64,000 nt of DNA from assembly GCA_038087875.1 (NCBI GenBank), contig CM075978.1, positions 55,924,001-55,988,000 on the forward strand, written 5' to 3'. A program made the position numbers and the translations under genes. This stretch comes from Malacoraja senta. Its lineage: Eukaryota. The notes under the pieces are model-generated. The model was not told the origin of the DNA, did not search any database, and saw only the letters and a list, made by a program, of their open reading frames with translations. Shown here piece by piece: positions 1,249 to 54,261 of this stretch (position 1 is its first letter; each line of letters opens with the position of its first letter).

Positions 1249-1377
1249 GATCAGACTGCCACCTTCGATTCCATTATGTGTGTTCGAGTTCTGAAATTGG
1301 TGTTGTTAACCTGTCTGCATCTTTACCTCAAAGGAGGTTTGTAATCAGAAGTGTGAAGTGCAGGCATTGGCTTGCAT

Positions 1378-3792: not shown

Positions 3793-3894
3793 GATACGGG
3801 AGTGTCAGGTGTTGCTGCTGGCAGGAAAGAACAGAGGATGTTTCATACCTGCTCCATACCTGGACGATTACGGAGAGACTGACCAGTTGCTCAG
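3793..3894 (+). CDS. UBR1: UBR1 penultimate coding exon (102 bp)
   Basis: ccaccag|...|gtatga. Encodes (R)[33 protein letters not shown](R); phase-compatible with both flanking exons. Confidence 0.9.
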
Positions 3895-4194
3895 GTATGA
3901 TTATTGCTAAGAAATGTATTTGGTAGCATTGAATTGTTTGTACAGCCAGTTGATATCTTTCCAAGCAATGACCTTTTCTGAATCTGTGCTATCAGGGACT
4001 ATAATGGATACTGCAGAGTAATTGGATTCCATAAAAGTTATCAATGGATGTTATAGTTCATTGGGATCGAAGTAGGGATGCTGTGACCGGAAAGAGTAGT
4101 ATTAATAGCTGAAGATTTGATGCATCAAGAGTAGACATCACTTACTCACTTTTCCTCCATCTACCTGGAGCAGAAACTAATTATTTATTAAGGA

Positions 4195-8830: not shown

Positions 8831-10969
8831 CCCTGTGGTGTATGCATTTTTACATTGGTGAGTTATCAGTGATCCATTTGATGTGTTATAACAGTCATGC
8901 TGTCATGAACATTGGTGGTAAGAACATAGTGAGCTGTCGTTTTAAGATTTTTAGCCACTGATCAGTGCACGCTGATTTAAAACCGAAGTCATTGTTTTTG
9001 GGTGAAATTCGGTAGCATTTAAGGAACTGCTTAAAGCCTTAGTGAAATCTGGAAATGCATAGGAGGTGGAAGGGAATTGTTGGCAGCCGGTCTGATGACA
9101 GTTGCTGATAGTTCACGTTTGAATCACTGCCCTGTAAATTAACTTCTGTGCCCACAGTTCCAGCCTTTCACGTGTGTGCTTTGAGCACCAATTACAATTC
9201 CAGTCTGAGTTAGTTTGTTATTGAGAAATGGGGCGTTTAGCTCAGCAGCGTCACTAACCTGAATCCAGTTACGTGTCTTTTGATCAAAGTTGCCACAACC
9301 ACGTTCTTTGTGGAGTTACAAACTCGTAGAAGTGGACTGATGCAGTGGCCCAGAGAGTCCAACCAGTCTGGGTTCCCTGGAAAACACCAAAGCTACCCAG
9401 AAATTATGGAATATAAACAGGAATGGCTGGTAAGTCCAGTAGGAGGCACAGCATCTGCGGAAAGAGAAAAACAAGTAATTGGAGCGTGCCAGTGATTACA
9501 CAGCAGGCACTCAAAAGCTGAAACATAAGCTGCTGTATGCTGGATATTTCCCACGTATTTTTATTTCAGATTATTCTGTATCTATTCCGGCATTTTTTTC
9601 TTTGTTTCTTCCTCCTCTGGTTTCCATCTGCTTACATTTCGTGACAGATTAGCTGCCAGTAACAACCTTTACTGCCCTCTCAGACAGCACCGGTCGACAT
9701 TACCAATTTTCTCTTGGATGTCTCCTTTATCGTATAGATAGGGTGAATGCACAGTCCTTTTCCCAGGGTGGTGGAATCAAGAATCAGAGGACATAGGTTT
9801 AAGGTGAGAGGGAAAAGGCTTAATGAGAACCTGAGGGCAACTTTTTTTATATGGAAGGTAGTGAGTATATGGAACAAGCTGCCAGAGGAAGTTGACAGGG
9901 ACGACATGATGGGCAAATAAGACTAGCTTAGATGGGGCAAAAAATGGAAATGCAGATGCTGATTTATACCCAAGATGGACGCAAAATGCTGAGTAACACC
10001 AGGCAGCATTTCTGGACAAAATGAATATGTGATGTTTTCGGCCGGGTCTCTTCTTTAGACCTTCAGCTTAGATGGGCATCTTGGTCGACATGGACGAGGT
10101 GGATCAACGTGTCCATTTCCAGTGCATTACCCATGCTTGCTGGGTAAGTGGCTGCTTCTAGTTGAGCCTGAGTCGGTGTGCAAAGTCGCTTGTTCTAGGA
10201 CGTAGGCGGGTGCGTCCACTGGTCCAGAATTTTGTGCGTTTCAGTGAGATTTCTTGCTCTTCTGAACTCTAAATAATACGCTGCCCAGTCTATTTGATGT
10301 AGCAAACTTGCTTTCTGTGGTAGCAGTCAAGTGAACTCGCTCTATGCCATATATATCCTTTGGTTTGGGTCAGGTGACTGAAACCTCACCCAACAATCCA
10401 TTTTCAGATCCTGCAGTGGTGCCAAAAAGTTAAATTCCATTTGCCATTCCTTTGCCCACCTTTCCAAATGATCTGAAATCTGTTGATAATTTAGATATCC
10501 TTCCTTATGACTAATGGCCTTAAGACCTCACAGTCAAATGTTGGTGTCATTTGCAAATGTATGTATAATGTTAACACATTGTCATCATCCAAACAATGAA
10601 TGAATAAACAAACAACAGGAGACCAAACACCGGGCCCTTTGACACATCGTTGTCGCAGGTCCCTCATCAGATAAAACAACCCTCCACAACGACCCTTTGA
10701 CTCCTTCCTTCAAGTCAAATTTGAATCCATTGGCCAGCTCACCTTAGATTTCATTAAAACTAACCTACACCATCATGTGAGACTTTGTGGTCTATATGGA
10801 CACTGCCCTGTCCTCATCAATACTTTTTGGGACCTCTTCAAAATAAACTCTTGGATTTGTGAGACACGATTTCCCACAAACGCAGCCATGCTGACTATCT
10901 TCCAAAACAGTCCATGCCTATTCACATACAGGTAGACCCTGACCCCAGGAATCCCCTGCAATACCTTTC

Positions 10970-13100
10970 ATAAGGTCATAAGTGATAGGAGTAGAATTAG
11001 GCCACTCAGCCCATCAGGTCTACTCCGCCATTCAATCATGGCTGATCTATCTCTCCTTCCTAACTCCATTCTCCTGCCTTCTCCTCATAACCTCTGACAC
11101 CTGTACGTATCATGAATCTATCTCTGCCTTAAAAATATCCACTGACTTGGCCTCCACAGCCTGCTGTGGCAAAGTATTCCACAGATTCACCACCCTCTGA
11201 CTAAATAAATTTCTGCTCAACTCCTTCCTAAAAGAACGTCCTTTAATTCTGAGGCTATGACCTCTAGTCCTATACTCCCCCACTGGTGGAAACATCCTCT
11301 CCACATCCACTCTATCCAAGCCTTTCACTATTCTGTATGTTTCAATGAGGTCCCCCTTCATTCTTCTAAACGGCCCAGTGCCGACAAATACTCATCATAG
11401 ATTAACCTCCTCATTCCTGGGATCATTCTTGTAAACCTCCACTGGACCCTCTCCTGAGCCAGCACATCCTTGGTGCCCAAAATTGCCCACAATATTCCAA
11501 ATGCGGCCTTACCAGCACCTTATAGAGCCTCAACATTACATCCCTGTTTTTGTACACAAGCGCTCTTGAAATAAATGCTAGCATTGAGTTTGCTTTCTTT
11601 TTTTTTTTTTTACAATTTTTTTATTAGAAGCAAGTACATAATAAAAACATTTCATATATATCAATCATACATTGCAAATATTATCAATTATTTAATAACT
11701 CTGCTTCTATTATTTTTTTTAATATAGATAGAAAATAATAAAGAGAAAGAAAAAAAAAGCATGGTAAAAAAAAGAATGGAATAAGTTACTAATACTACAA
11801 CATTGGAGATAGGTTTGAAGATTATTAAGTATAACTTTTCATCTAATCCTGAGCTCGAGCTTCTGTCAGTTTTCCGTGCCGAACCATTCTACCCCTTCAA
11901 ATAGTCGATAAATGGAGACCATATTCTGACAAAAAGTTCTTGTTTGTCCATTAAGACAAGTCTAATTCTTTCCAAATGTAAGGTCTCCGACATTTCCATA
12001 ATCCACATTTTAATTGTAGGAGTTATAGGGCCTTTCCAAAATTTTAATATTAATTTTTTCCCAGTTATTATACTGTAGTCGAGAAAGTTTCTTTGGCTGT
12101 AGTAAGTGTTAGGCTTTGTTCTGATATTCCTAATATTATTAGTTTTGAGTCGGGATCCAATTGGGTGTTGACAACTTCTGAAATTATTTTTAAAATTTCC
12201 GTCCAATTTTTTTTAAATTTTTATACAATTTACAAATGTGTGAGTTAAATTAGCCTCTAAATGCTGACATTTTTCACGTAGGAGATGTGTGGGAAGATTC
12301 TATTTAATTTAGTTTTTGAGTAATGTAACCTATGTAATATTTTAAATTGTATTAAAGAGTGGCATTTAACGAGCATTGATGTATATGTTGTAAACTTTCG
12401 TCCCAAATATCTTTCATTATTGGTTGTCCTAGTTCATTTTCCCAGGTTTGCCTATATAATTCCGTCGGTGGTGCCTCACTGTCTAATAGGATATTATAGA
12501 TATAAGATATTAATTTATCTGTATTAGGATGTTTATTCAAACATTCATCAAGAATTTCGGAATCTCTAGTTCTGCAGTCTTGTGTATTTGATTTAACAAA
12601 ATCTCTAAGTTGTAGATATCTTAAATAGTCATTGAGTGGAGTCCATAAGTTTGTTGTAATTCCTGAAATGAAAGAAAGGTACCTTTCCTATAGAGATGAC
12701 CCATCTTCTTAATTCCTTGATTTTTCCATTGTGAAAAACCTTTGTCCAACATTGAAGGTTTAAATGCAGGGTTGTTTACAATGGGGAGAGAGAGTGATAA
12801 ATTATCCAATTTTAAAGTCTTTTTTAATTGCTTCCAAATTTGTATACCACTGTGTTTGCTTTCTTTACTAGCAATTCGAATTACATATTAATTTTTTGGG
12901 AATCTTGCACCAGCACTCCCAAGTCCCTTTGCACCTCGATTTCTGGAGTCTCTCCCCATTTAGAAAATAGTCTACATCTTTATTTCCACTACCAAAATGC
13001 ATGGCTCCACACTTTGCTACACTATATTCCATCTGCCACTTCTCTACCCACTCTCCCAACCTGTCCAAGTCCTTCTGCAGAATCCCTGCTTTCTCTACAC
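10970..13100 (-). mobile_element. CR1 LINE 3' part, split by an L1 insertion
   Basis: KGDLIETYRIVKGLDRVDVERMFP (11110-11361) and DRLGEWVEKWQMEYSVAKC (12868-13068) are collinear CR1 pieces. Confidence 0.9.
11601..12853 (-). mobile_element. L1-clade LINE 3' fragment with poly(A) tail and TSD
   Basis: Poly(T) at 11598-11611; gtttgctttcttt duplicated at 11588-11600 and 12854-12866; L1 ORF2 C-terminal peptides (KKLILKFWK, LHLERIR, IWSPFIDYL). Confidence 0.85.
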
Positions 13101-13285: not shown

Positions 13286-14842
13286 TAGCAATGTTACAAA
13301 ATTTTGAGATTTTAAAAATCAAGTCTGCAATTTATCCCATCAGATAAAGCATAAAAAGAAGTTTAATTTGACACCTAATTCACTTTCATATCTTCAGTAT
13401 TTAAAATGTTATGGCCATTTTCATACTCGGAAATTCTTGGATCTTGTTCCCTATTGCTTTTGCATTGACTTAACACAAAAGCTGTGATTGAGGACAGTCA
13501 AAAGCCCATAACTTTCTTAAAAATTAAGAGAACTGAATGACATTTTCAGTTAATATAGATTGAAGCATTCTGAAACAAATATAAAACATCTTGGATGACC
13601 TGAAATTAAAGCATATAGTTAGTTAATTACCTAATTGTAGCTAATTACAAAATTGACCGTTGTGACGGAAATAGTAATAAACACCCAGACTGCCTTGAAA
13701 ATTCAAAAATGTGATATTCTCAAGATCAGAACTTTAATATTATTGTATTATATGCTGTAAGTTCGTAACAGATAGGTAAATAAATTACAATTTCTAGCAA
13801 TAGACCAAGTCTTTATGGAGAAGATCAGTTGCTAGCTGGTACATTGGCATATCATAATCACTAGCATCATCATACTCCTCAGATTATAACCAATAAACAA
13901 CTCTGTACACCTGGTTTTTCCTCAACTCTTCAATTTTGGCATTGTAAACTACAAGTTTTTGCTCTTCAAACCACGCATGACATGCCTTTCTGCCCAATAC
14001 TTTCCCATTAAGAATGTCCTGTAGATTCCATTTCTTAAGAAAAGGATTTTTTTTTTAAATAGCCTAAGTATCCAAATAACAAACTAATCCCATTCACACA
14101 AGAATTCACAATAGAACATGATTTTTAAATCTCACTGTCATGAATTCATATGCTAGATGGAAGGAATTTGATGTTTAATTCCCATAAATTAATCTAGAAG
14201 CATCAATATAATCAAAACAAATATTTTTTTGCACAATACATGGGACTAAAACTGATATTTAGTATAAAAATATTGACTATGCATAGACAATAACACAAAA
14301 TATAGACGATTTAGATGCTCTTATGACATGATTGTCCAAAAAAAAGAGCATTTAAATCATCTTGCGAGTGGGTTTTTTGGAACGCGATCGATTGGAATGT
14401 TGCATTTGCAGTGAATTTGAACCCCATATCGGCAGGAAAAACACTGCCGGTTCGTATGGGGCCAAAATCACATTTTCGCAACGTAAAATTAGATTAAATC
14501 CATCCCAAGAAGCAGGTATATATGTAAAATAAACAACTTACCCTTTGTTTTGTCCCGTTCTTGCGATCCGTCACGTTGTAGGCGTTGAGGACGTTAGAAG
14601 TCGCATTTTATTTTAATCAAATTATTAAATTGTCTCATGATTTAAAAAAAAAAAAAAAAATCGAGAACAGACGTCGGATCAATTATTCTTCAGCAGCTAG
14701 CAGCCCGAGGAAATCCTCCGCCGACAGGCAGCAGAAAACTGGATTTTAATCCCGCCCACCCCCCCTCAAAGGCACCAAAGTCGCGCACACGGCCAGTGGC
14801 AGAACTGCAGCGCCGCTGAAGGTAAGTTTTGTAACATCGCTA
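13286..14842. mobile_element. Non-autonomous DNA transposon with TAG-terminated TIRs and 7-bp TSD (copy A)
   Basis: TIRs tagcaatgttacaaaa / ttttgtaacatcgcta; TSD ttctaat at 13279-13285 and 14843-14849. Confidence 0.85.
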
Positions 14843-16029
14843 TTCTAATCATGGAGATTTATCCACCTTAATGGGTTTTAAAACTGCCAGTACTTTTTCT
14901 TTAGTAATTTGTATATGATCTTGGGCATGACAACTCCTTTGCCTCAATTCCTTAGCTTCCATGATCTTCTCAGTACAAATGATGAGAAATACTTACGGTA
15001 TTTAATATCTCCCCCATTTCTTGTGGTTTGAGACAAAGTTAGTCATGCTGTGCTTTAAGGGGACCTATATTTTTCCTCGTACCTTTTTACTCTTAATGTA
15101 CCTGTAGAATCTGTTGGGATTTTCCTTTACCCTGACCACTAGCTCCATTTCATTTCTTCTTTTTGCCCGCCTGACTGCTTTCTTAAGTTTATTCCTTCCC
15201 TTATACTTGTGGAGGGGTTCACTTGATGCCAACTTCCTAAATCTGACGTATACATCCTTTTTTTGTCCTGACCAAACCCTCAACATCACTCTTCAACCAA
15301 GATTCCCTAAATTTACCAGCCTTACCCTTCATCCTAACAGGAACATGGATAAGGAAAGATTTGGAGGGATATTGGCCAACTGCAGACAGGTGGGACTAGC
15401 ATAGGTGAGCATCTTGGTCACAAAATGGACTAAAGGTTCTGTTTTCATGCTGTATGATTCTATGCTGCCCTTGTTCTCTTGCTATCTCAATTTTGAAAAT
15501 TAGTGCATCTTATTAGTGCATTTCTCACTTGCCGGCATCCCTTACTTGTAAACAACCACAGCAAGTTCCCGCCTAATATTTCCAAATCAAACTTGCTTTA
15601 ATTTAGGATCATTACTTGGGGGCCAATGCTATATTTCTCCATAACTGCTTTAAAACAAATTGAATTATGGTCACTGGTCCCAAAGTACCCCCCACCCCCC
15701 CCATTAACACTTCAGTCACTTGCCCTCCCCAACATGAGTTCCACTGCTGTACCCTCACTAGTAGGGCCCATCATATATTGGTTAAGAAATCTTTTCTTGG
15801 GCATATTTAACAGATTCCACCCCAGCCAAGCCCTTTACACTACTGGAGATCCAGTGGGTAGAATTCCATGTGTAATCTTCAACTCAGTGAACCATAGTGA
15901 GATGATTGCAGTGTGAATAGAAGTATCCATCTCCACAGTGTTTCCTTCCACTCTATGATCTTCAATTATGTCTGATGCCACAGGACATGCACTTGCTTTA
16001 TTTTTTGCACCATATAATGCCACTGTATA

Positions 16030-16330
16030 ATGGGGTTTTGTGGTGCAGCAGGTAGAGCTGTTGCTTTTCAGTACCAGAGACCCTTATTCAATCCTGGTCT
16101 CTGGAGCTATCTGTGTGGAATTTGCATGCTCTCCCTGTGACCATATGGGTCTCCTCCAACCTCCCAAAGACAATGCAGTTTTGTAGGTTAATTAGCCTCT
16201 GTAAATTGCCTCTAGTGTGAAGGGAGTGAATGCAAAAGTGGAATAAGATAGAACTCGTGTGAACGGGTATCGATGGTCAGCGTGACTCAGTGGGCAGAAT
16301 GGCCTGCTTCCCCGCTGTATCTTACAATCA
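16030..16330 (+). mobile_element. tRNA-derived HE1-like SINE
   Basis: A-box-like gtggtgcagcaggtagag, B-box-like ttcaatcct, V-domain-like tgtgtggaatttgcatgctctccctgtg, CR1-like tail. Confidence 0.75.
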
Positions 16331-16695
16331 ATCATTACTACTGCTCTCAAAACAAAAGCTGTCCACATTATGTAAAATGCTGCGAAATGCTAATTTTATT
16401 TTTGAAAAGTATGTCATTACTCCAGGCTACACATTTTGAACACCACGCAGATATCTGTAAATATCTGTTTTGCAATTCATGATAGTCTTCACAGTAACTT
16501 GATTAAGCAAATCATTGCAAAGGTAATAAATGATGTTTCAAAAACAGCGTATCTTCGACAAGACGTGTACACTTTGACTGATCTCAAAAGAAACCTGCCT
16601 GCAAGAAAATTAGCAAAAACAGGGAAAGATAAAGTTCGCACTCTAAGTCAGTTGCTATTCCACATGACGCGTGGGGAATCTCTAGTGTCCAGAAC

Positions 16696-18216
16696 CAAAG
16701 ATCATAGAGGTTCACTCCGCGAAAAAGCCGTAGTATGTGAAGGGTGATCTTCAGCGCCATTTCCGTAACCGGCTTCCGTCATGGTGTCCTCATCTACAAG
16801 CGGAGCGTACTGCTCTGCTATAATTTGCTCGAATCGCCAATGTAGGCGACCCGACCTGTCTTTCTTCAGGTTCCCCATGGAAAAACGATCTTTGGTCGGA
16901 ACGACTGTTACCCGACTGGAACTGATATGTTGAGACTCCGAACCAGTGTGTGTTTGGCACATAGGGCCGCCTGTCTAAACTACACCAAGCGATTGATGTC
17001 AAGGGCTTAAATGTGTATCCACACACACGCCTTTCAGAAAATTGCAGCAACAGCGATAATTAAATTGGAGAATGAAACGAGACAGGTTGGAGTTGAATGA
17101 AGTAGGCGAAGAAGAGAGAAATCACGAGAAAAAGACATGCTCGGCTCAATGTATCAATAATAGTTTTAAAAAACTGGCCAACCCAGTCCAACCTTCCCCA
17201 GTAAATTAACAGGGATACTGCAATAAATTTGGTAACATTGTGTTCCTGTCTTCTGTATTTGTTCTGGAGATTGATGAAACTGACCTAACCTTTGGCAGAA
17301 GTAATTGGTTCTAGGCTGGTGTATGAAGCTATAGCTGGATTTTTTGTGTCCTTGATCCAGATTTAAGACAATTTTGCTCTGTATCTAAGTTTCTTGCAGA
17401 GGCAGCACAAGCTAATTCAGGGAGATTCTGCTATATCAGGTTGAGAGATTAAAGGGTAGACACAAAATGCAGCGGGTCGGGCGGCATTTCTGGACATTTC
17501 GGGTCGAGACCCGTCTTCAGACTGAGTCGGGGAAAGAGGAACACGGTACCAAGGACAAATGAATGGAAGATATGCCGATATCTCCCGTTTCCCTTGACTG
17601 TCAGTCTGAAGAAGACCAGTCGACCCGAAATATCACCTATTCCTTTTCTCCAGAGATGCTGCCTGATCTGCTGATTTACTCCAGCCTTTTGTGTCTGTCT
17701 TCGGTTTAAACCAGCATCTGCAGTTCCTCCCTGTACAAGGTATGTGCTGTTTTCGTGTGTATTAGCGTGTGTCCAGTCAGATTTGGCTTCCAGTCAGATT
17801 AACAATCATGCAAGTTTTCACACACACACTTACTTCAGCAAATAGCGACCAAGGCAGTGCTGACTGTGATGGGGGAAATTGATGAGAGTTTGCTGCATTT
17901 AAAAAGAAATTAAAAACATGTTTTAAAAACAAGTTTTTAAAACATTTAAAAACACAAAAACTGTTCCCCCTCAACGCTAATTACACTGCGAGAGGCATAA
18001 TTGAAGTCGGAGGTACACAAAAATGCTGGAGAAACTCAGCGGATGCAGCAGCATCTATGGAGCGAAGGAAATAGGCAACGTTTCGGGCCGAAACCCTTCT
18101 TCAGACTGAAGTCGGGTTGGGTTTACTGAAATGGCGGAAGTTACGCTCCGTTGCGTACTACACTCAGTCCATTGGATTTCAGGAGTGAACCATCTTGCTC
18201 TGCTCTATGATCTTTG
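16696..18216 (+). mobile_element. P-element-like non-autonomous transposon
   Basis: Perfect 14-bp TIRs CAAAGATCATAGAG / CTCTATGATCTTTG; 8-bp TSD tccagaac at 16688-16695 and 18217-18224; THAP remnant inside. Confidence 0.82.
16781..16888 (+). pseudogene. N-terminal half of a THAP zinc finger (transposase exon-1 remnant)
   Basis: ATG at 16781 reads MVSSSTSGAYCSAIICSNRQCRRPDLSFFRFPMEKR, matching the THAP pattern C-x4-C...SFFRFP. Confidence 0.75.
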
Positions 18217-18834
18217 TCCAGAACCAATGACCCCATCGAGCAACTAGTCATATTGAAGAATTGGAAAAGGCAGCAAACCATACACTGTGGAGGATCAGGT
18301 AATGAACAAAACAGACTGTATAATTCTGCCCCAGACTTTGTTCTTGTCTTTCCTCTGTTGTAATAGAGTGTTGTTATTCTCTACAGATTCAAGTTTTTCT
18401 ACAAATCTATATATTTAAAGAAATTAGATCTCTGGAGAAAAATTAACAGTGACTTTGAAACAAACAGCAACCTTAAGAACTTACAGTATACCTGAAGATG
18501 TCAAGATATTTCTACTGCTGGGAGAATCTCAAATGAGGGACATGATTACATCATTGAAACCTGAGATGTGTAAGAGCATCACTTAGATTGGTCTGATTTG
18601 GTTTATTATTGTTTATTTTTGTTATCATATGCACCAAGATCATTCCGCACATGAGTATATCAGGTTTGCAAATGAGAAAATAAACACTGTAAAATATAGT
18701 GTTACTGATGCAGAGAAAGTACAGATGAAAAATACAATTGGAAGATCGGGAATACATCCCCAGCATATAAGATTCATTTGCGTGTCTGATAACAGTGTCT
18801 GATCACGCTCCCAATGTGCATAATTGATTTTAGA

Positions 18835-25480: not shown

Positions 25481-26139
25481 GGAACTCCGTCGTTGTTCCG
25501 TCTTTTTGGAAATGGAGTGAGAGCAAAACTACGGGATATAGATGAAACGCAGGTGAGGATCCAATTTGTTTAGGATCTTGTTTAGGATCACAACTTGTTT
25601 AGGATCACAACAGAACCAATCCCAGCATAGCTATCTGCCTCAGTCAAGAAATCTTGCTGGATTTTAATGTCATTTTATTATGTTAACACTGAAAGTAATT
25701 ATTTCTACAAAGTAATTATCTAAAATGTACATATTTGATTATAAAAGTACAGAGATTATATAGCTTAATTTTCCTAAAAGATTACAAATCGGAATAAAAG
25801 AGCTAATTTTATTTCTCTATTTTCAAAATAAACTGTACATAGAATTAATTTAATTAATTGGGATTAATTAATGAAGGTAAAATTAATGTAGGTTCCTTGT
25901 TGATTTTTCAGGACATGGTTACCAAGAGTAAAGACAGCATTTATTGTCCTTGAAAAGGACACTCACCACCACCAACTACCATCTTGCCCCTTGTATATAC
26001 CAAGATGTACATTTTTTTTTGGCTCCGTCTCTGGCAACTCCCGGTGAGAGAGATGGACTAAAACATTTTTGAAAGGGCTTTCAATTTTGCACGTCCCCCC
26101 CGCACCTCCCCCCCCCGGGATTTCCGCCCATGTGTCCAT

Positions 26140-26795: not shown

Positions 26796-27182
26796 GCAGT
26801 CAATTAGATAATTGGTGATGCAGTGTAAGAAAGGTGGAAGTAATTCTTTGCACAGTAAGTTCCCATCTGCAAACAATGCAGTGATCAGGTGATGATAGTT
26901 AAGGCAGTAATATTGGCCCAGAATTGCTCCTCCGCTTTACTAAGAGTCATGCAAATCCGCAGTTTACCATCTCATCTGAAAGACAACACCTATAACAACG
27001 GACATTCAGTGGATACTCCAGCATGGGCAGACCTTTGCTCACCACCATCTGACTGAGAGTCCTCTTACCTCTGCCCCAGTTACAAGTGAAATCATTTGGT
27101 TTAAGTATCCAAGTTTTAGATGTCCAGGGTGGTACATCCTGAAAGGAAACGGGTTATTGAACACTTTACTCCATTTGTTTAC

Positions 27183-27426
27183 CTCAAAGAACCAGATGAT
27201 TAGGATGGAGAGCCCGATGGACTGCATGATCTGGGTGTAATGATCCAGCAGTGCCTGTCGGTAACCTGTTCAATGGTTCAGCTCCTCTGTCAGGTCGTCG
27301 TAGTTGTAATGGACCGGGTTGTTGGGGAGGTCGAACTGGATGCAAGGGCGAGGTGAGTTGAAGTTGCAGCAGCTGAAGGGGATGCCATCCATCAAATACT
27401 TCCCATCCACGTTACTCCTCAAACGG
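27183..27426 (-). pseudogene. PRPH2L: Peripherin-2-like pseudogene, coding exon 2
   Basis: ctgcag|...|gtaaac. Encodes [80 protein letters not shown], with an in-frame TGA at 27272-27270. Confidence 0.92.
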
Positions 27427-27477
27427 CTGCAGTGGGAGAAAAACTCTTATGTGAACACAACTCATCTCCATCTGAAT

Positions 27478-28210
27478 AGACAATACAATAATACTTTGTT
27501 AGCCAAGTGTGTTTTGCAACATACGAGGAATTTCATTTGCCAAGTCAGTCATACAATAAAAAGCAACAGAGCGCACAAAATACATTTTAACATAAACATC
27601 CACTACAGAGACTCCTCCACATTCCTCACTGTGATGGAAGGCAAAAAAAAAAGTTCAATCTCTTCCCTTCTTTGTTCTCCCGCGGTCGTGGGCCTCGAGC
27701 CATCCGTTGATGGGATGATCTTGACTCCCGTAGCTGGCGGTCGAGCCCTTCGCATCAGGGCGATCAGTTCCTGCAACGGGGGGATCTCAGCTCCCAAGCG
27801 CTGGTGATCGGAGCCCCAGGTCAGGGCTGGTCGAACCTCTGCGTCGTTGGAGCTTCCCGACTCGGTCTCTCCCGAGACTGCGAGCCCTTGATGGTTGGAG
27901 TAATCCCAGGCAAGGGATCAGCCCCGATGGTAAGTCCCATGCCCCGCGGTGGGGCTCAAAGTCAGTCTCGGGGAGGCCTCCAGCTCCAAGATGTTAGGCC
28001 GCAGAGCGACCAGAGATACGATCCGAAAACCAATCGCATCTCCACAAGGTAAGAGACTGAAAAAAAGTTCCCCCTCCCCCTCCCCCTCCCCCACATAAAA
28101 CAAACCAGAGGACATTTACACAAACTTTTAAAACACACTAAAAATAAGAAAAAAAAGACGAAAAAACAGACTGTTGGCAAGGCTGCCAATCGTACGGTGT
28201 CCCTGGTGGT
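27478..28210 (-). mobile_element. Non-autonomous retroelement: GC-rich body plus Rex/Babar-like tail
   Basis: Tail-like ...cttggctaacaaagtattattgtattg on the - strand joined to a CpG-rich body; no coding homology recognised. Confidence 0.45.
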
Positions 28211-28391
28211 GAACACCAAGCCTCAACTCACTCAAAGAGCCAGTCACTGAATCCTCTCAGAAAACCATCCAGCCCATCTTCTCCTGTTAGTCCCATTCCT
28301 TACTCCTTCCTCACAGCTGAAAATTGTTGCCTTCTGTATATCTAATATCCTATTAATTTATTCTGCTTTCACCGTCCTTTCAGGTAGCACT

Positions 28392-28675
28392 TTCATAGCA
28401 CCATAGACCCGGATTTGATCTTGAGTTTGGGTACTGTCTGGGTGGAGTTTGCATGTTCTCGCTGTGAACGCATACGTTTCCTCCAGGTGCTCCAGTTTCC
28501 TACCACATCCTGATGATATGCAGGTTTGTAGGTAAATTTAGCTCTATATATTGCCACCAATGTAGATGCGAAAGTGGGATTGCATAGAAGTAATGTGAAC
28601 AGGTGATCGATAGTCAGCGAGGACACTGGGCCGAAGGATCTGTTTCCAGTCTGTATCTCTAAAACGAAATTAAAA
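28392..28675 (+). mobile_element. HE1-like SINE
   Basis: ggtggagtttgcatgttctc V-domain-like core and CR1-like tail. Confidence 0.7.
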
Positions 28676-29037
28676 CATTTAACATCTTTTCAATGCCATC
28701 TTTATCTTCCTCTTGTATCTCCAAGCAATAATTTAACATCCCCATCCCTGGGATACTAGCCATCAAAATACTAATCATTTTATTGCCAAATATTTGGATT
28801 TACAATCGGAAGATTAAATTATTAGGTCAAAACTGTGAAGAACTCTTGAGGCAGATGGGAATGTTTTGTGTTTCTTAATGTGAACTTTATATGCAGCAGC
28901 TTCCATTAAATCACATTATATTTAGCAGCTGAAGAACCTATTTCATTTATTGTTAATCTTGTCTCACTCCCCCCCACCAGTGCTGGAAGTGTCCAGTACA
29001 CCACCCTTGCTCTCATTATCCTCCATGCTTTCCCTTA

Positions 29038-29767
29038 GGGGCCTGTCCCACTATGGCGACCTAATTTGCGAGTTTAGAAGAGATTGCGCTCGCCACAAAC
29101 TCGCAGCATGGTCGACACGTGGTCCTATGAGGTCACTGTAACTCTCCTTCATGCTCGAGAGAAGTTCCCGCATACTCGAGGCCTCAGTTTGGTCGAGGGA
29201 CGTTTTTCAGCATGCTGAAAAATTTTCCGCGAGTAAAAATTGGTCGGCATGGTTCTTTTCAACTGGTAGTGGGGTCGCCATGTAGTTATAGACAGTCGAG
29301 GTAGCTGCAAGCAATCTCCTTGGCTGACCGGGCATTTTAATTGGCTCATTGTAGGAAAACCGACCAGTAATGTTAAATGCCCGCAAAACTTTATTAAAAG
29401 TTGTCTGGCTTCTTAAATGTGTCTCCACTCCTTCTCCCCCCCCTTCTCTCCCCCCTTCTCTCCCCTTCTCCCCCCTTCTCTCTCCCCCCCCCCCCCCCCC
29501 GCTCTCTAACGCACTTACCATACACTGTGCCAGCCGTCTTTTACCTTCCTGTTCATCGTGGGTGTGAATTTCAGACAGCGCTCCCCAGCTTTCCCTGGCC
29601 CCCGCCTTTGCGATGTGTTTGTGTGTGTGTGTGTGTGTGCAGACGGTCAATCCAGCTCACGGTTTCATCGCTGACGGTCGATCCAGCTCGAGGTTTTTCA
29701 GGCGAGTGCCCTCGATCTTGAAGATCGAAGACAGTTGCTGAAAAGTTGAGTAAGTGGGACAGGCCCT
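29038..29767. mobile_element. PIF/Harbinger-type MITE
   Basis: TIRs gggcctgtcccact / agtgggacaggccc; flanked by tta and tca (imperfect 3-bp TSD); no ORF. Confidence 0.7.
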
Positions 29768-29869
29768 TCAGTCTTATTCCATTTAGATGAACCAAGTGGA
29801 CCAGATTCTTGGGCAGTCGTAATGGACCTAGATCAGGTACCTGAACATCATGTGTTATGATGGACACAG

Positions 29870-30265
29870 AGCAGACTGGGACCATATTCCCTGGAGTGCA
29901 GGAGGATGAGGGGTGATCTTAAAGAGGTGTATAAAATCATGAGAGGAATAGATCGGGTAGACGCACAGTGTATCTTGCCGAGAGTAGCAGCATTGGGAAC
30001 CAGAGGACATAGGTTTAAGGTGAAGGGGAAAGATTTTATAGGAATCTGAGGGGTTTCACATAAAAGGTGGTGGATGTATGGAACGAGCTGCCAGCAGAGG
30101 TAGTTGAGGCTGGGACTATTGCATCATTTAAGACAGGTACATGGATAGGACAGGTTTAGAGGGATATGGGCCAAATGCAGGCAAGTGGGACGTGTAGATG
30201 GGACATGTTGGTCGGTGTGGGCAAGTTGGGCCGATGGACCTATTTCTACACTGTATTACTCTATG
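29870..30265 (+). mobile_element. CR1 3' fragment
   Basis: gaggggtgatctt...gtgtataaaatcatgagagg coding relic plus 3' UTR. Confidence 0.8.
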
Positions 30266-31009
30266 TATTGATTATTGTGTATTTATGGTTTGTTATTGCA
30301 TTAATGGGCATATTAAGCTGCAGCAAGTAAAAATGTCATTGTTCTGTTACCAGTACACGTGACAATTAAACACACTTAACTCTTTCAGCATTTGAATTTT
30401 ACCAAAAGTAACCTAAATATGCAGCACTTTGAATTGTTTCACTAACATTCCTACTCCAGACCATCTGTACAGCCTCCGTTGCCTACTTCCTCCCAGCCTG
30501 GCATAACTGGGAGGCCGCCAGACCTCAATCATTTGTACCCACAGCAGCCAGAACGATTTACATCTGTTGCAGCCAACGGGAACAATAATTTGAAGAGGCG
30601 GCAGCAAGCCATGGTGAAGTGAGTTGTGTAACCCTTATTGGGGAGAAGGCAAGAGAATGGGGTTAGGAGGGAGAGATAGATCAGCCATGATTGAATGGCA
30701 GAGTAGACTTGATGGGCCGAATGGCGTAATTCTGCTCCTATCACTTATGACGTTATGACCCTGTAATGTGGTTCAAACTGCGTTACTCCGAGTTCCACTA
30801 GTCTGGGAAAGAGAGGATTGAGATTCTCACTTTAAACCCGATAAAACTACACTGAAAATGGAATGGACCAGGAAGAACGGTGTTCACTGATCAGATATAC
30901 TGGAAATATGGGGAAAGTAGAGAGAAAATGAAAACTTGTAACTTCTGAGGTTGACTCAATTTATATCTGTTGTTTGAATCCCCAAGCTTGAATTTCCCAG
31001 ACTAGTGTA

Positions 31010-32420
31010 ACTGGAGGTTTTCCAGTCTGGGTTTAAAACAATGCATAGCACAGAATCAGCATTGCTAAGGGTTTTTAATGACATCCTCTTAGCAAATGAT
31101 TCTGGTAATTATGTGGTTCTTGTCCTGCTGGACCTATCTGCCGCCTTTGATACAGTGGACCATGGTATCTTAATATCTCGGTTACAGCACCTAGTGGGCA
31201 TCTGTGGCAGTGCCCTGGAATGGTTCAGGTCCTATCTGGCAGACAGAACCATGTGTGTAAGCCTTGCTGGTTTTGAATCCTCCTCCGCTCCTCTGTCATA
31301 TGGGGTTCCACAGGGCTCAATTTTAGGGCCCCTGCTTTTCTCACTATACTTACTTCCTCTGGGTTCCATTCTTAGAAAGCATGGCATCTCTTTTCATTGT
31401 TATGCTGATGATAGCCAACTATATATACCGCTGAGGAAGGAAGATGCCTTTTCTGTTAAATCACTTCTGTTATGTCTTGAGGACATTAAGTCCTGGATGG
31501 CCCTAAACTTTCTAGGATTTAATGAAAAGAAGACAGAGGTGATATTGTTTGGACCCAATGGCTGCCGTGAACCTCCCCTTGTTGACTTGGGTCCACTGGC
31601 ACGGAATTGTGAAGCCAACAGTTTTGAACCTAGGTTTTAGGATGGACAGTGATTTTAAATTAGATCATCAAATAGGCGTGGTGGTTAAGTCCAGCTTCTT
31701 TCACCTAAGGAAGCTGGCAAAGGTGAAGCCCATTCTCGAGCGGCAGCATTTTGAAACAGTAATCCATGCCTTTATTACATCTAGGCTGGATTACTGTAAC
31801 GCACTCTATTTTGGAGTTGCACGATCTTCACTGGCTCGTCTCCAGTTGGTTCAAAATGCTGCTGCTCGCCTTTTAACTGGAACTCGAAAGAGGGAGCACA
31901 TAACGCCAATTCTGGCCTCCCTCCACTGGCTCCCGGTGCACTTTCGAGTTCATTTTTAAGTTCTTTTATTTGCTTTTAAATCTCTAAATGGGCTCGCCCC
32001 GCCTTACCTCTCTGAACTGCTCCACCCATACGCTCCTGCCCGGTGCCTCAGGTAAGCTGATCAGCTGCTCCTGGAGGTACCGAGGTCTAAGCGGAAGCTC
32101 AGAGGAGATAGAGCCTTCTCTGTTGCTGCTCCGGCACTCTGGAACACCCTGCCGTTGCACATCAGACAGGCCCCCTCACTGTCCATCTTCAAAACCAGTA
32201 TTAAAACACATTTATATTCCTTGGCTTTTGACACTGCTTGAGACTTTGCTCCTGTTTTTAGTGCTTTTAATGTTTTTAATTTTATTGTTTTTACTCTTTC
32301 GTTTAATGTTTTTATTGTTATGTAATAATTTCTTGTCCATGATTAATCATGTACAGCACTTTGTTGCAACTGTGGTTGTTTTTAAAGTGCTCTATAAATA
32401 AAGTTATTATTATTATTATT
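31010..32420 (+). mobile_element. L2-clade LINE 3' part with (TTA)n tail, in the PRPH2L intron
   Basis: HSTESALLRVFNDILL, LLDLSAAFDTVDH, GVPQGSILGPLLFSLY, HCYADD and LQLVQNAAARLL motifs; ends aataaagttattattatt. Confidence 0.9.
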
Positions 32421-32611
32421 CAACAAATATTGAGGATGATGGCAGATAGATTTATTAATACCTAAGGGAACCATGGGATTTAAGGGGGAGAGATAAGATA
32501 GTGAGGTGGATGAATAGCTCCAGTAGTACTGAATGGTACAGTGGAGCTGCTCAGATATTCTTGCTCCTATTTTCTGTCACCCGTGCCCTCCCCCATTTCC
32601 TTTCCACATAC

Positions 32612-32917
32612 ACCTGGACCTCTTTGGAGTTCATGTCCAGATAGCGTGAGCTGATCCACTGGATCTCGAACCAGTCCCTGAAGCCGTTGTTGCCGCAGCA
32701 GTGGAACTCAAAGTGAAACTCGTCCACGGTCTTCTTGAGGGAGCACCTGCCCGGGGTATCAGTGTCTTTATAGAACCTCATGGCGCGCTGGAGGCCCAGG
32801 TAGAGGGACTTCTCCATCATGCTCCTCATGCTCCAGGATGCAGAGGGTGAAGAAAAAGGTGCAGGTGATGTAAGGAAGCATGAGCAGCCTCCAGCGGGAG
32901 GACATGTTATCCGAGCA
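32612..32917 (-). pseudogene. PRPH2L: Peripherin-2-like pseudogene, 3' part of coding exon 1
   Basis: [28 protein letters not shown], frameshift near 32833, then [37 protein letters not shown]...[29 protein letters not shown]; donor gtatgt at 32611. Confidence 0.92.
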
Positions 32918-34584
32918 CACAAAAACGCTGGAGAAACTCAGCGGGTGCAGCAGCATTTATGGAGTGAAGGAAATAGGCAACGTTTTGGGCCGAAACCCTT
33001 CTTCAGACTGATAGGGGGTGGGGAGAAGAAAGGAAAAAGGCGGAGGAGGAGCCCAAGGGCTGAGGGATGGGAGGAGACAGCCCGAGGGCTGAGGAAGGGG
33101 GAGGAGACAGCATGGGTTAACAGAATTGGGAGAATTCAATGTTCATGCCCCCAGGATGCAGACTCCCCAAGCGGAATATGAGGTGCTGTTCCTCCAATTT
33201 CCGGTGTTGCTCGCTCTGGCCATGGAGGAGACCCAGGACAGAGAGGTCGGATACGGAATGGGAGGGGGAGTTGAAGTGCTGAGCCACCGGGAGGTCAGGT
33301 TGGTTATTGCGGACCGAGCGGAGGTGTTCGGCGAAACAATCGCCAAGCCTCCGCTTGGTCTCACCGATATAGATCAGCTGACATCTAGAGCAGCGGATGC
33401 AATAGATGAGGTTGGAGGAGATGCAGGTGAACCTCTGTCGCACCTGGAACGATTGCTTAGGTCCTTGAATGGAGTCGAGGGGAGAGGTGAAGGGACAATT
33501 GTTGCATCTCTTGCGGTTGCAAGGGAAAGTGCCCGGGGAGGGGGTGGTATGGGAGGGAAGGGAAGAATTGACAAGGGATTTACGGAGGGAGCGGTCTTTG
33601 CGGAAGGCAGACATGGGGGGAGATGGGAAGATGTGGCGAGTGGTGTGGTCATGTTGGAGGTGGCGAAACTGACGGAGGATTACTTGTTGTATGTGATGGC
33701 TGGTGGGGTGAAAGGTGAGGACTAAGGGGACTCTGCCCTTGTTATGAGTGGGGGGATGGGAAGAGAGAGCAGTGTTGCGGGGTATGGAAGAGACCCTGGT
33801 ACGAGCTTCATCTATGGTGGAGGAGGGGAACCCCCGTTCCCTGAAGAATTAGGACATTTCAGATGCCCTGGTGTGGAACGCCTCATCCTGGGAGCAGATG
33901 CGGCGTAGACGGAGGAATTGGGAGGAGGGGATGGAGTCCTTACAGGAAGCAGGGTGGGAAGAAGTGTAGTCCAGATAGCCTTGGGAGTCAGTAGGTTTAT
34001 AGTGGATGTCGGTCAGAAGTCTATCACCTGCGATGGAGATAGTGAGGTCAAGGAATGGTTGGGAAGTGTCGGAAATGGTCCAGGTGTATTTGAGTGCCGG
34101 ATGGAAGTTAGTGGTGAAGTGGATGAAGTCAGTCAGTTGTTTGTGGGTGCAGGAGGTGGCACCAAAGCAGTCGTCGATGTAGCGGGGTAGAGGTCGGGGA
34201 TGGGGCCCTGGTACGTATTGAACAAGGATTGTACGACGTACCCGACAAAGAGGCAGGCGTAGCTGGGGCCCATGCGTGTGCCCATAGCTACGCCTTGTAT
34301 TTGGAGGAAATGGGAGGAGTCAAACGAGAAGTTATTGAGGGTAAGGACCAGCTCTGCTAGGCGGAGGAGGGTGTCAGTGGCCGGGTATAGGTTGCTTCTC
34401 TGGTCGAGGAAGAACCGGAGGGCTTTGAGACCATCCTGGTGGGGGATGGAGGTGTAGAGTGACTGGACGTCCATGGTGAAGATGAGGGGGTGAGGGCCTA
34501 GAGAATGGAATGCGCGGAGACGACGGAGAGTGTCTGAGGTGTCTTGAACATAGGTAGGGAGGGATTTGTTAGATAGGGAGGGAG
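32918..34584 (-). mobile_element. Penelope-like (Neptune) retroelement inserted in PRPH2L exon 1
   Basis: RT (TMDVQSLYTSIP, GVAMGTRMGPSYA) and GIY-YIG pieces; nearly identical to the copy at 1-1248; TSD tgttatccgagca at 32905-32917 and 34585-34597. Confidence 0.93.
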
Positions 34585-34840
34585 TGTTATCCGAGCAGTC
34601 GTGGCAGATTTTGCCCCCCAGCAGGTTGTCACCACAAGCAATGGCACCAACCGCCACCAGCATTTTGGGGACCGAGGCCGTCCCCTCACCCGCCAGCACC
34701 TCCCTGCGTTTCCTCATCTCCAGGCACAGGTAAACTCCCAGGCTGATCAAAACCAGCACCGACACCCAGTTCGAGATCCACAGCACCTGGGCCAGTTTGT
34801 CTCTCCTGCTTTTGGTGAATCTCACTCCAAGAACAGCCAT
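34585..34840 (-). pseudogene. PRPH2L: Peripherin-2-like pseudogene, 5' part of coding exon 1
   Basis: gccATGG at 34840 reads MAVLGVRFTKSRRDKLAQVLWISNWVSVLVLISLG...VPKMLVAVGAIAC...LLGGKICHDCSDN, closely like the RDS2/PRPH2L N-terminus. Confidence 0.92.
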
Positions 34841-35584
34841 GGCCGAGACCGCAAGAAGATGGGGTTCGGGCATGACCCTGACATGAGATCACGGGGTAAC
34901 CTTCCTGCAGAAGGCAAATTCAATAGTCAGGAACCTACACGGCACAGAAACAGGCCATTCGGCCCAACTAATCCACACAACCAAGTTGCGTAAGCAAACT
35001 AGTCCCACAAGTCTGTATCTGATCTATACTCCTCCATACCTTTCAAAGTGTCTTTTACAACTTGTATTTGTTCCTGCTTCTAACACTCTCTGGCAGCTTG
35101 TTCATGTGGCCACCACCCTCCGTGAAAATGTTGCGCCTCTACATTTTATCTTTCTCGCCTTAAACCTATGCCCTCTGGTTTTAGACTTCTGTACCCTGGG
35201 GAAATGACTGGGTCTATTCACTTTATCTCTGCCACTCATGACTTTATAAACTTATTTCTTTGAAATATGACAATGATTTTGTCAACATTTGTTACGTTTT
35301 TTTAAATTAAAACTGAGAATCCCGGAAGCATACAGTGACGCTGGACTACTCTTTTCGGGACTTCCAGAGGTGAAAATCTTCAACAGAACAACCACGATAC
35401 AATCTCTGGAAACACTCGGCAGTTCAGAGGGTGACTGCCGTGAGGAGCAAGTTATCGCTTCCATTCTTCATGATCAACTTCCATGACCGGAGTGAGGTTT
35501 GTGACAAAAGACTGAAGCAAAAGTTGGCGGTGAGGTGGAAAGGTGGGAGAGGGCGGATTTCTGAGCCTAGTAAAAGGCACTCAC

Positions 35585-46289: not shown

Positions 46290-49200
46290 AGGTGAAATAT
46301 TACTTCTGTGGGTGGGTTTAAACTAAATAGCAGGAGGGAGGGGTCGGCAAATTGGAAGTTTAAGGATGGAGTTAAAGGGAAAGAGAGGAGTACAGGTAAA
46401 GTTACGAAAGACACCCAAATGAATGGGACGGAAAGTTCAAGAAGCGATAAGAGGGTAATGTCAGGTGAAATAGGAACCGGTGTGAGAGGGGAGGTGAATA
46501 TCGAATTAAAAGTGTTATATATGAATGCGCGAAGCATAAGAAATAAAGTGGATGAGCTTGGGGCTCAGTTAGAGATTGGTAGGTATGATGTTGTGGGAAT
46601 TACAGAGACATGGCTGCAAGAGGATCGGAGCTGGGAACTGAATATTCGGGGTTATATGTCCTATTGAAAAGACAGACAGATGGGCAGAGGGGGTGGGGCA
46701 GCGGGGGAAACCAGGCACCGCACATCACCTGGCCAATACCATACCTACGATGAAGCATGGTGGTGGCAGCAGCATACTATGGGGATGGTTTTCAGTGACA
46801 GGAACTGGGAGACTAGTCAGGATCGAGGAAAAGATGAACAGAGCAAAGTACAGAGAGATCCGTGATGAAAACCTGCTCCAGAGCATTCTGGACCTCAGAC
46901 TGGGGCGGCGGTTCACCTTCCAACAGGACAACGACCGTAAGCACATAGCCAAGACAACGCAGGAGTGGCTTCGTGACAAGTCTGTGGATGTCCTTGAGTG
47001 GCCCAGCCAGAGCCCGGTCTTGAACCTGATCGAACATCTCTGGAGGGACCTGAGAATTGCTGTGCATCAACGCTCCCCATCCAACCTGACAGAGCTTGAG
47101 AGGATCTGCAGAGAAGAATGGGAGAAATGACCCAAATACAGGTGTGCCAAGCTTGTAGCGTCATACCCAAGAAGACTTGAGGCTGTAATCGCTGCCAAAG
47201 GTGCCACCAACAAAGTACTGAGTAAAGGGTCTGAATACTTATGTAAATGTGATATTTCAGTTATTTCTTTTTAATTACTTTGCAAAAATTTCTAAACACC
47301 TGTTTTTGCTTTTTTATTATGGGGTATTGTGCATAGATTGATGATTTAAAAAAAAGAATTTAATCCATTTTAGAATAAGGCTGTAACGTAACAAAATGTG
47401 GAAAAAGTGAAGGGGTCTGAATACTTTCTGAATGCACTGTATCTACAGGCCCCCAAACAATAGCCTGGATATAGGGTGCAAGTTGCATCAGGAGTTAAAA
47501 TTGGCATGTAGCAAAGGTAATGCTATGGTTGTTATGGGAGATTTCAACATGCAGGTAGACTGGGAAAATCAGGTTGGTACTGGACCCCAAGAAAGGGAGT
47601 TTGTGGAGTGCCTCTGTGATAGATTCTTAGAGCAGCTTGTACTGGAGCCAACCAGGGAGAAGGGAAATCTGGATTTAGTGTTGTGCAATGAACCGGATTT
47701 GATAAGGGAACTCAAGTTAAAGGAACCACTAGGAGGTAGTGACCATAATATAATAAATTTTAATCTGCAATTTGAGAGGGTAAAATCAGAAGTGTCAGTA
47801 TTGCAATTGAACAAAGGGGACTATGGAGGCATGAAAGAGGAGCTGGCCAAAGTTGAATGGAAAGGGACCTTAGCAGGGATAATGGTGGAATAGCAATGGC
47901 AGGAATTTCTGGGAATAATCCAGAAGATGCAGGATCAATTAATTCCAGAGGAGGAAAGATTCTAAGGGGAGTAAGAGGCAACCGTGGCTGACAAGGGATG
48001 TCAAGGACAGTATAAAACGAAAGGAGAAGAGAAAAGAGAAGACGTATAACATAACAAAGATGAGCGGGAAGCCAGAGGATTGGGAAACGTTTAAGGTACA
48101 ACAGAAGGTATTTCATTGTCCTATCAGGGACACATGACAATAAACTCACTTGAACTTGAACTTGAAGGTAACTAAAAAGGTAATACGGGGAGAAAAGATG
48201 AGGTACGAAGGTAAGCTAACCAAGAATATAAAGGAGGATAGTAAAAGCTTATTTAGGTATGTGAAAAGGAAAAGATTGGTTAAGACAAATGTGGGTCCCT
48301 TGAAGACAGAAACAAGAGATTAGTGGGCAAAATTAGAGCACATGGTATTGGGGGTAGGGTATTGAAATTGATAGAAAGTTGGCTGGCAGACAGGAAACAA
48401 AGAGTAGGAATTAACGGGTCCCTTTCAGAATGGCAGGTAGTGACTCGTGGGATGCCGCAAGGCTCGGTGCTGGGACCGCAGCTATTTACAATATATATTA
48501 ATGATTTAGATGAATGAATTAAGAGTAACATTTGCAAATTTGCAGTTGACACAAAGCGGGGTGTGAACTGTGAAGAGGATGCTATGAGGATGCAGGGTGA
48601 TTTGGATATGTTGGGTGTGTGGGCAGATGCATGGCAGATGCAGTATAATGTGGATAAATGTGAGGTTATCCACTTTGGTGGCAAGAACAAGAAAAACAAG
48701 AAGGCAGATTATTATCTGAATAGTTTAAGAAGGTAGACAAAAATTCTGGAGAAACTCAACGGGTGAGGCAACATCTATGGAGCGAAGGAATAGGTGATGT
48801 TTCGGGTCGAGACCCTTCTTCAGACTTATCTGAATGGTGTCAGATTAAGAAAAGGGGACAAGGAGACCTGGGTGTCCTTCTACATCAGTAATGGCATGTT
48901 GGCCTTCATAATGAGAGGATTTAAGTATAGGAGCAGAGGTCCTTCTGCAGTTGTACAGGGCACACAACACTTGGAGTATTGTGTGCAGTTTTGGTCTCCT
49001 AATTTGAGGAAGGACATTCTTGCTATTGAGGGAGTGCAGCGTAGGTTCACCAGGTTAATTCCCGGGATGGCGGGACTGTCATGAGGAAAGAATGGACCGA
49101 CTGGGCTTGTATGCACTGGAATTTAGAAGAATGAGAGGGGATCTTATAGAAACATATAAAATTATTAAGGGATTGGACACGCTAGATGCAGGAAATTTTT

Positions 49201-49508
49201 CCCGATGTTGGGGGATTCCAGAACTAGAGGCCACAGTTTAAGTATAAAGGCTAGGCCATTTGAAACTGAGATGAGGAAAAACTTTTTCACCCAGAGAGTT
49301 GTAAATCTGTGGAATTCTCTGCCTCAGAAGGCAGTGGAGGCCGACACTGGATGCATTCAAAAGAGCGTTAGATAGAGCTCTTGGAGCTAGCGGAATCAAG
49401 GGATATAGGGTGAAGGCACTGATTGTGGATGATCAGCCATGATCACAGTGAATGGCGGTGCTGGCTCGAAAGGCTGAATGGCCTACTCCTGCACCTATTT
49501 TCTATGTA
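46290..49508 (+). mobile_element. Long CR1 LINE (endonuclease + partial RT) with nested insertions
   Basis: LKVLYMNARSI..GITETWL, YRPP..VMGDFN..SDH (APE domain), [10 protein letters not shown] (RT) and 3' tail tctatg; internal deletion near 48310. Confidence 0.9.
46700..47439 (+). mobile_element. Tc1 transposon right half, nested in CR1
   Basis: [19 protein letters not shown] and [15 protein letters not shown] motifs; ends gaatactttctgaatgcactg|ta. Confidence 0.9.
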
Positions 49509-54100: not shown

Positions 54101-54261
54101 CTGCCCATTATCCTTTTCTTATGTTTTCACCTATCACCTGCCAGCCTCTATCTCACCTGTCCCTCTCACCTCTTTATTTTCCCTTTGCACTCTCAGTCCT
54201 GATGCAGGATATCAACCCCGCTGAGTTCCCAGAGCAGTTTACACTTAATAACTATTAATAG

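Follow-up and report, generated by a model that had tools for sequence, protein, structure and literature searches.

The DNA analysed here, a stretch of 64,000 nucleotides called the window below, comes from the skate Malacoraja senta (assembly GCA_038087875.1, contig CM075978.1, positions 55,924,001 to 55,988,000 of the forward strand). On its minus strand lie the remains of PRPH2L, or RDS2, one of the three ohnologues – RDS, ROM1 and RDS2 – that make up the family of photoreceptor tetraspanins to which peripherin, a shaper of photoreceptor discs, belongs (PMC2965184). Exons 1 and 2 are present there, with introns and splice sites kept. The first exon is split in two. Its upstream part, exon 1a (34598..34840), found by tblastn and DNA alignment, begins with an ATG at 34840-34838 and runs through the first transmembrane segment (TM1), the first extracellular loop (EC1) and TM2 up to the site of an insertion; in tblastn it is 81-84% identical to residues 1-91 of PRPH2L from Pristis and Rhinoraja. 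The downstream part, exon 1b (32612..32917), recovered by tblastn in two frames and by alignment, encodes TM3 and the beginning of the second loop (EC2) with its CCG motif, and a GTATGT donor follows it directly at 32611. Exon 2 (27183..27426), located by tblastn and alignment, retains both its acceptor and its donor; it measures 244 nt against 247 in intact genes and is 82% identical to PRPH2L residues 194-277 (tblastn). Taken together, the remnant exons share 81-87% protein identity with PRPH2L of Pristis and Rhinoraja. The first-pass annotation, made from the letters of the window, had proposed intron-containing exons of the peripherin family at this place, and all its pieces are located where it had put them, on the minus strand.

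The family to which these exons belong can be read from several comparisons. Exon 1b matches bovine peripherin-2 (PDB 7zw1_A) with E 6e-29 and ROM1 (7zw1_B) with E 1e-21. Its match to the Pfam family Tetraspanin, PF00335, reaches 27.2 bits for a cut-off of 32.1, the query being a fragment; the same domain is present in all full-length PRPH2L orthologues. The closest proteins, found in sawfish, electric ray, stingray, sharks and a single skate, bear without exception the name 'photoreceptor outer segment membrane glycoprotein 2(-like)', a synonym of PRPH2L/RDS2, and are 66-84% identical over the first 96 residues. The remnant retains the CCG motif and the PFSCC cysteines, while the last conserved cysteine of EC2, at the position of PRPH2 C250, is a tyrosine, a change which, to judge from the sequence, fits a decayed member of the family. 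PRPH2L belongs to the same fold family as PRPH2 and ROM1 (PDB 7zw1); in common with them it has a CCG motif, the cysteines of EC2 and a layout of three exons, which in Pristis measure 578, 247 and 267 nt. The Pristis protein scores 437 bits against PRPH2 and 238 bits against ROM1. Unlike PRPH2, it is a separate ohnologue, linked to UBR1 and not to UBR2.

Orthology was established with a maximum-likelihood tree of 21 PRPH2L proteins, the read-through of the window copy (X standing at each break) and the PRPH2 of the same genome, no ROM1 sequence being included. The window sequence is sister to PRPH2L of Rhinoraja longicauda (support 100/95) within a batoid clade (100/99), itself nested in a chondrichthyan PRPH2L clade which matches the species tree; the genome's other peripherin, PRPH2, sits on a long branch far outside. 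The neighbourhood tells the same story. The last exons of a UBR1-type gene, identified by matches to PF18995, lie on the plus strand at 2765-2941 and 3791-3898, tail-to-tail with PRPH2L, and the UBR box of that gene is found 133 kb upstream of its terminal exons. Assignment to UBR1 against human UBR2 is by modest margins (71.8 vs 67.2 and 57.8 vs 50.3 bits for the two pieces). The other peripherin locus of the genome, PRPH2 at C2:140654730-140668918 on the minus strand, has the same layout beside a gene which is clearly UBR2 (110.7 bits, vs 63.3 for UBR1). At both loci the arrangement is tail-to-tail, and the genes thus fall into two pairs of ohnologues, UBR1/PRPH2L and UBR2/PRPH2. In Narcine, too, the PRPH2L locus is overlapped on the opposite strand by a UBR-type gene, of 1,757 residues. 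An unprocessed PRPH2L pseudogene adjoining UBR1, as had been proposed, is therefore what the tree, the retained introns and splice sites, the broken frame and the tail-to-tail UBR1-type exons describe.

That the frame is broken comes from a DNA alignment of the exons of five species: the window, Rhinoraja, Pristis, Narcine and Chiloscyllium, the last three with intact genes. The window copy displays six separate disabling events, all given here on the minus strand. Within TM1, a 9-bp in-frame deletion at about 34755..34756 has removed three codons which are there in the other four species. Exon 1 is then interrupted by a 5'-truncated Penelope-like insertion of 1,667 bp (32918..34584), without counterpart at the Rhinoraja site and flanked by a 13-bp target-site duplication: the upstream copy, at 34585..34597, has the same bases as 32917-32905, and the downstream copy occupies 32905..32917, where Rhinoraja has a single copy. 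A 20-bp deletion at 32832..32833 shifts the frame in TM3. In exon 2, alignment and residue mapping reveal a TGA at 27270..27272; it arose when an out-of-phase deletion of 3 bp took bases from the codon of the conserved tryptophan (PRPH2 W246) and from the threonine codon after it, so that TGG ACA in the four other species has become TGA in the window. A few bases further on, at 27261..27263, TGC has changed to TAC, replacing Cys249, an essential residue of the large loop EC2 at the position of PRPH2 C250, by tyrosine (again by alignment and residue mapping). The last event is the deletion of exon 3, with its stop codon and conserved flanks, at a breakpoint filled with 40 bp (26093..26132): a segment of 3,182 bp, Rhinoraja locus 15559-18740, has no counterpart in the window, and it carries exon 3 at 17433-17699 together with two blocks conserved with Pristis. 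For exon 3, tblastn at E 10 gave no match within the window, nor was one obtained elsewhere in the genome by a protein search or by a DNA search using exon 3 of Rhinoraja. Further non-conservative replacements belong to the window lineage, among them Asp for Val74 (TM2) and Ser for Leu23 (TM1). The product predicted from such a remnant cannot be a four-helix tetraspanin.

Most of these lesions had been noticed at first reading. The 1.67-kb Penelope insertion in exon 1, the loss of about three codons in TM1, the frameshifting deletion near 32833 and the change of an EC2 cysteine in a GC(R) to GY(R) context all reappear in the five-species alignment, with the sizes and positions just given (1,667 bp with its 13-bp duplication, 9 bp, 20 bp at 32833/32832, and TGC to TAC at 27263-27261). 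Two points have to be amended. The TGA at 27272-27270 is there, but the missing codon of exon 2, counted as a lesion in its own right, is not: a single 3-bp deletion made both, so that the earlier count was one too high. Exon 3, reported as impossible to find, is indeed absent, and this because the 3.2-kb deletion took it out.

Could the assembly have invented these lesions? Read support, also asked for at first reading, was sought in Logan contigs aligned to window positions 27100-33099. Run X1, which comes from the organism of the window, gives contigs with zero differences from it over 27100-27528 and 32432-32945. This rules out assembly error for the TGA, the replacement of cysteine by tyrosine, the deletion of 20 bp and the insertion's 3' junction. 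Runs X3 and X8, from two other organisms, yield contigs of exon 1b with approximately 5% differences from the window. They share the 20-bp deletion – the only difference in length being nine further bases missing at 32817 – and their match to the window breaks off precisely at the border of the insertion (32917), to be followed by 40 and 276 letters unlike Penelope. Over exon 2, no contig of X3, X8 or a further run, X15, was listed. The Penelope insertion thus appears to be missing in the two organisms, as far as these contigs tell. The 20-bp deletion, being shared, predates their split, and the insertion, apparently missing from them, would be younger than the deletion. Exon 1b was not found in any run recorded as RNA, this organism included.

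Rhinoraja longicauda, a softnose skate of the family Arhynchobatidae (GCA_053455715.1), provides a second and quite different picture. Across introns and flanks, its locus is collinear with that of the window; it has none of the six lesions, and its exon 3 is intact. Yet its PRPH2L, whose protein is labelled LOW QUALITY at the NCBI, has been damaged separately, by three lesions. A 517-bp repeat interrupts exon 1 at the CCG motif (Rhinoraja locus 10496-11012). Also in exon 1, a poly-G run adds 9 bp exactly where the window has lost its 20 bp. In exon 2, slippage has duplicated 7 bp and shifted the frame (Rhinoraja locus 14380-14410). We considered whether the coincidence at the poly-G site might be the trace of a shared ancestral lesion and rejected the idea, as Rhinoraja has gained 9 bp where the window has lost 20; a common unstable precursor at this place is possible.

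The decay of the gene is also visible in the way its codons evolved, a matter raised at first reading as a test by dN/dS. It was studied over 262 codons, those for which each of the five species has sequence. With ancestors reconstructed by parsimony, non-synonymous and synonymous changes stand at 23 : 7 on the tip leading to the window, 14 : 5 on the Rhinoraja tip, 18 : 27 on the skate stem and 94 : 143 on the background branches. Pooled, the two tips give 37:12. This ratio does not depart from the neutral expectation (p 0.6), but it does from that of the background (Fisher p 6e-6) and that of the stem (p 7e-4). A branch model (GY94-F3x4, in our own implementation, fitted by maximum likelihood) leads to the same view: the ratio of non-synonymous to synonymous rates, omega, is 0.098 on the background and 0.75 on the skate tips (2dlnL 34.3, p 5e-9), where it does not differ from 1 (p 0.40), and the skate stem, with 0.108, behaves as the background does (p 0.82). 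Evolution is thus neutral-like on both skate tips and purifying elsewhere. With the stem constrained and the tips neutral, constraint must have persisted along the long stem that followed the separation of skates from the other batoids, and have ceased at about the time when the window skate and Rhinoraja last shared an ancestor.

An intact PRPH2L elsewhere would change the meaning of all this, as the first-pass annotation had foreseen. Genome searches, which score the best candidates only, turned up no second copy: the Pristis PRPH2L query matched this locus and the PRPH2 locus, and nothing else. A search with exon 1 of PRPH2 returned the same two loci and no third peripherin-family locus that might be ROM1, no ROM1 query having been used. 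In the essential PRPH2 gene itself, exon 1 (minus strand, C2:140666816-140670418) contains two single-base indels, 110 codons apart, which compensate for one another: one nucleotide is lost after GAC, giving an immediate TGA, and an extra C precedes the CCG motif. Both lie in runs of C and, from the sequence, look like assembly errors; were they real, the skate would be left without any intact peripherin gene.

A few further observations concern the locus and its surroundings. Some 60 bp before the ATG of PRPH2L (window ~34900-34920), a splice acceptor is conserved in all four batoids compared, which suggests a non-coding exon, upstream and unannotated; the promoter would then lie elsewhere. 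A promoter comparison upstream of the ATG gave no informative signal. The inserted Penelope-like element carries the tail of a reverse transcriptase and a GIY-YIG domain, with internal stops and a frameshift; its Pfam matches, RVT_1 with E 0.0066 and GIY-YIG with E 0.024, are both weak and under their cut-offs. It is 94.2% identical to a second copy at window 2-1250, just before the terminal exons of UBR1, where an unbroken frame of 384 amino acids with reverse transcriptase tail and GIY-YIG domain occupies 54-1208 on the minus strand. An open frame of 246 amino acids that joins the N-terminus of the peripherin to the element was discarded as meaningless, being the chance in-frame junction of a 5'-truncated element. 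Intron 1 harbours a reverse transcriptase fragment of the long interspersed nuclear element type (30988-32417), with plus-strand frames of 199 and 136 amino acids and no counterpart at this place in Rhinoraja. The repeat that interrupts exon 1 of Rhinoraja also has copies in the window, at 49015-49505 and 54257-54731. At a larger scale, UBR1/PRPH2L (C2:55.79-55.96 Mb) and UBR2/PRPH2 (C2:140.58-140.67 Mb) are located on one chromosome, ~85 Mb apart, and the two paralogous regions seem to have been brought together there. Finally, a third locus with C-terminal exons of the UBR1 type (PF18995) is present on an unplaced contig (C5346:53598-55490); a further UBR-type gene and an uncollapsed duplicate are both conceivable.

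How should we understand this locus? We hold, with a probability of about 0.85, that the only copy of PRPH2L found in this genome is a dead, unprocessed pseudogene, still at its ancestral place beside UBR1. The gene would have stopped mattering around the point where the two skates last had an ancestor in common, and no coding lesion is found in both. Since no such lesion is shared, the simplest scenario is that the need for the protein, or its expression, was lost first, the coding sequence then decaying separately in each lineage. The likeliest reason, provided that PRPH2L acted chiefly in the outer segments of cones, would be that skates lost these cells. Published work treats skates as rod-only animals (PMC11886822). 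They have neither lws nor rh2, cone opsin genes which sharks and rays both keep (PMC12361510), and in the little skate pde6c, arr3, gnat2, cngb3 and grk7 are pseudogenes, PRPH2L not being mentioned (bioRxiv 10.1101/2025.07.30.667746). Among cartilaginous fishes, annotated PRPH2L proteins exist in 18 species other than skates, and the only skate record is the damaged one of Rhinoraja; in all the sharks, rays and chimaeras looked at, the gene is whole, a pattern that hints at a death shared with the cones and does not prove it. Of the interpretation then offered, the pseudogene stands, and the decay of a cone programme is still an inference, if a plausible one: we regard cone loss as the cause of the decay of PRPH2L only tentatively, at somewhat under an even chance. 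A bolder form would make PRPH2L the cone-specific peripherin of non-mammalian vertebrates, and its decay a clock for cone loss. Skates would then have had functional cones through most of the time since they parted from the rays, to lose them only near the last common ancestor of living skates, because the stem is fully constrained, both tips are neutral and no coding lesion is shared. This we find rather doubtful.

What speaks on the other side is best told together. On the technical side, X1 may come from the very individual that was assembled; identity then rules out an assembly error and not a polymorphism, a concern which is addressed by the presence of the 20-bp deletion in two other organisms, X3 and X8. 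The 9-bp deletion, the 5' junction of the insertion and the deletion of exon 3 lie outside the stretch covered by the read check. The single-base indels of PRPH2 call for caution with small indels in the same assembly, which, with 1.94 Gb in 6,182 contigs, may also have left an intact copy unassembled. The lesions of Rhinoraja are known from its assembly only, where the poly-G run may be a sequencing artefact, and omega was estimated from 262 codons and 49 tip substitutions. It might accordingly be argued that a working PRPH2L exists in the species, the lesions being errors of assembly or a rare null allele, for which the probable errors in PRPH2 and the three lesions beyond the read check could be invoked. 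This account is largely refuted already and we take it to be very improbable: read-derived contigs are exact for the TGA, the lost cysteine, the 20-bp deletion and the insertion junction, that deletion is common to two other organisms, omega on the tips is near 1, and the lesions are large, not slips in homopolymers.

On the biological side, the cone link meets objections. RDS2 is reported lost in mammals, which do have cones, and its function is described as unexplored (PMC2965184); as marsupials have an annotated PRPH2L protein, the mammalian loss looks placental. In zebrafish, prph2la is absent from the retina at 5 days post fertilization and prph2lb is undetected, in a larval retina that is cone-dominated (bioRxiv 10.64898/2026.08.06.743304). 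We found in the literature no data on the cell types that express PRPH2L in any elasmobranch or other cartilaginous fish. The death of the gene may also have been unrelated to cones, PRPH2L having been a dispensable partner, much as ROM1 is, with PRPH2 alone enough for disc rims and the gene drifting away as in mammals. ROM1 is redundant to PRPH2 in the mouse (PMC10665016), losses recur in the RDS family (RDS2 in mammals, ROM1 in reptiles; PMC2965184), and, as the PRPH2 exon 1 query matched no ROM1-like locus in this genome, skates may already run on PRPH2 alone. A gene of that kind is not what one sees in the relatives: omega of about 0.1 on all other branches of cartilaginous fishes and on the long skate stem says that PRPH2L is not generally dispensable there, and the only chondrichthyans found with a broken copy are the one group known to be without cones (PMC11886822). 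In the same source, the Australian swellshark figures as a possible rod monochromat. We consider this explanation possible, on the unlikely side. The missing retinal signal of zebrafish prph2la, and a function so little explored, could also be taken to mean that PRPH2L serves extraretinal photoreceptors, such as those of the pineal, or some other cell type, and that its loss tracks a change there. This seems improbable to us, for databases list the gene as 'photoreceptor outer segment membrane glycoprotein 2' (CRDS2), a name that suggests the outer segments of photoreceptors, and nothing in the analysis points to a pineal change in skates. CRDS2 was first cloned from chick retina.

Returning to decay that accompanied the loss of cones, the closest parallel is that of the little skate cone pseudogenes, which, like the present one, are unprocessed, located at ancestral loci of a rod-only skate and marked by nonsense and frameshift lesions, while the genes are kept in sharks, rays and chimaera (bioRxiv 10.1101/2025.07.30.667746). 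Unlike these transduction genes, PRPH2L encodes a structural tetraspanin of the discs, is not on the published list, and its cone specificity is still a hypothesis. What is added to that work is a second skate family with different lesions, together with a dated shift in selection. The loss of RDS2 in mammals is that of the same gene in another vertebrate lineage (PMC2965184); unlike mammals, which kept their cones, skates retain a decayed remnant that can still be read. We found no published report of PRPH2L loss in skates. Regressive loss of genes in a rod-only lineage is a known phenomenon, of which PRPH2L is one more case.

It matters because PRPH2L, kept from lampreys to birds and marsupials, is a protein that has been little studied. 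That it has decayed at least twice, by different lesions, in a lineage devoid of cones makes for a concrete hypothesis on where the protein works. It adds a structural gene of the outer segment to the published list of decayed cone genes of skates, and it gives a relative date for the end of constraint. Should the absence of ROM1 hold, this would further suggest that the rods of skates build their discs with PRPH2 as the only protein of the peripherin family.

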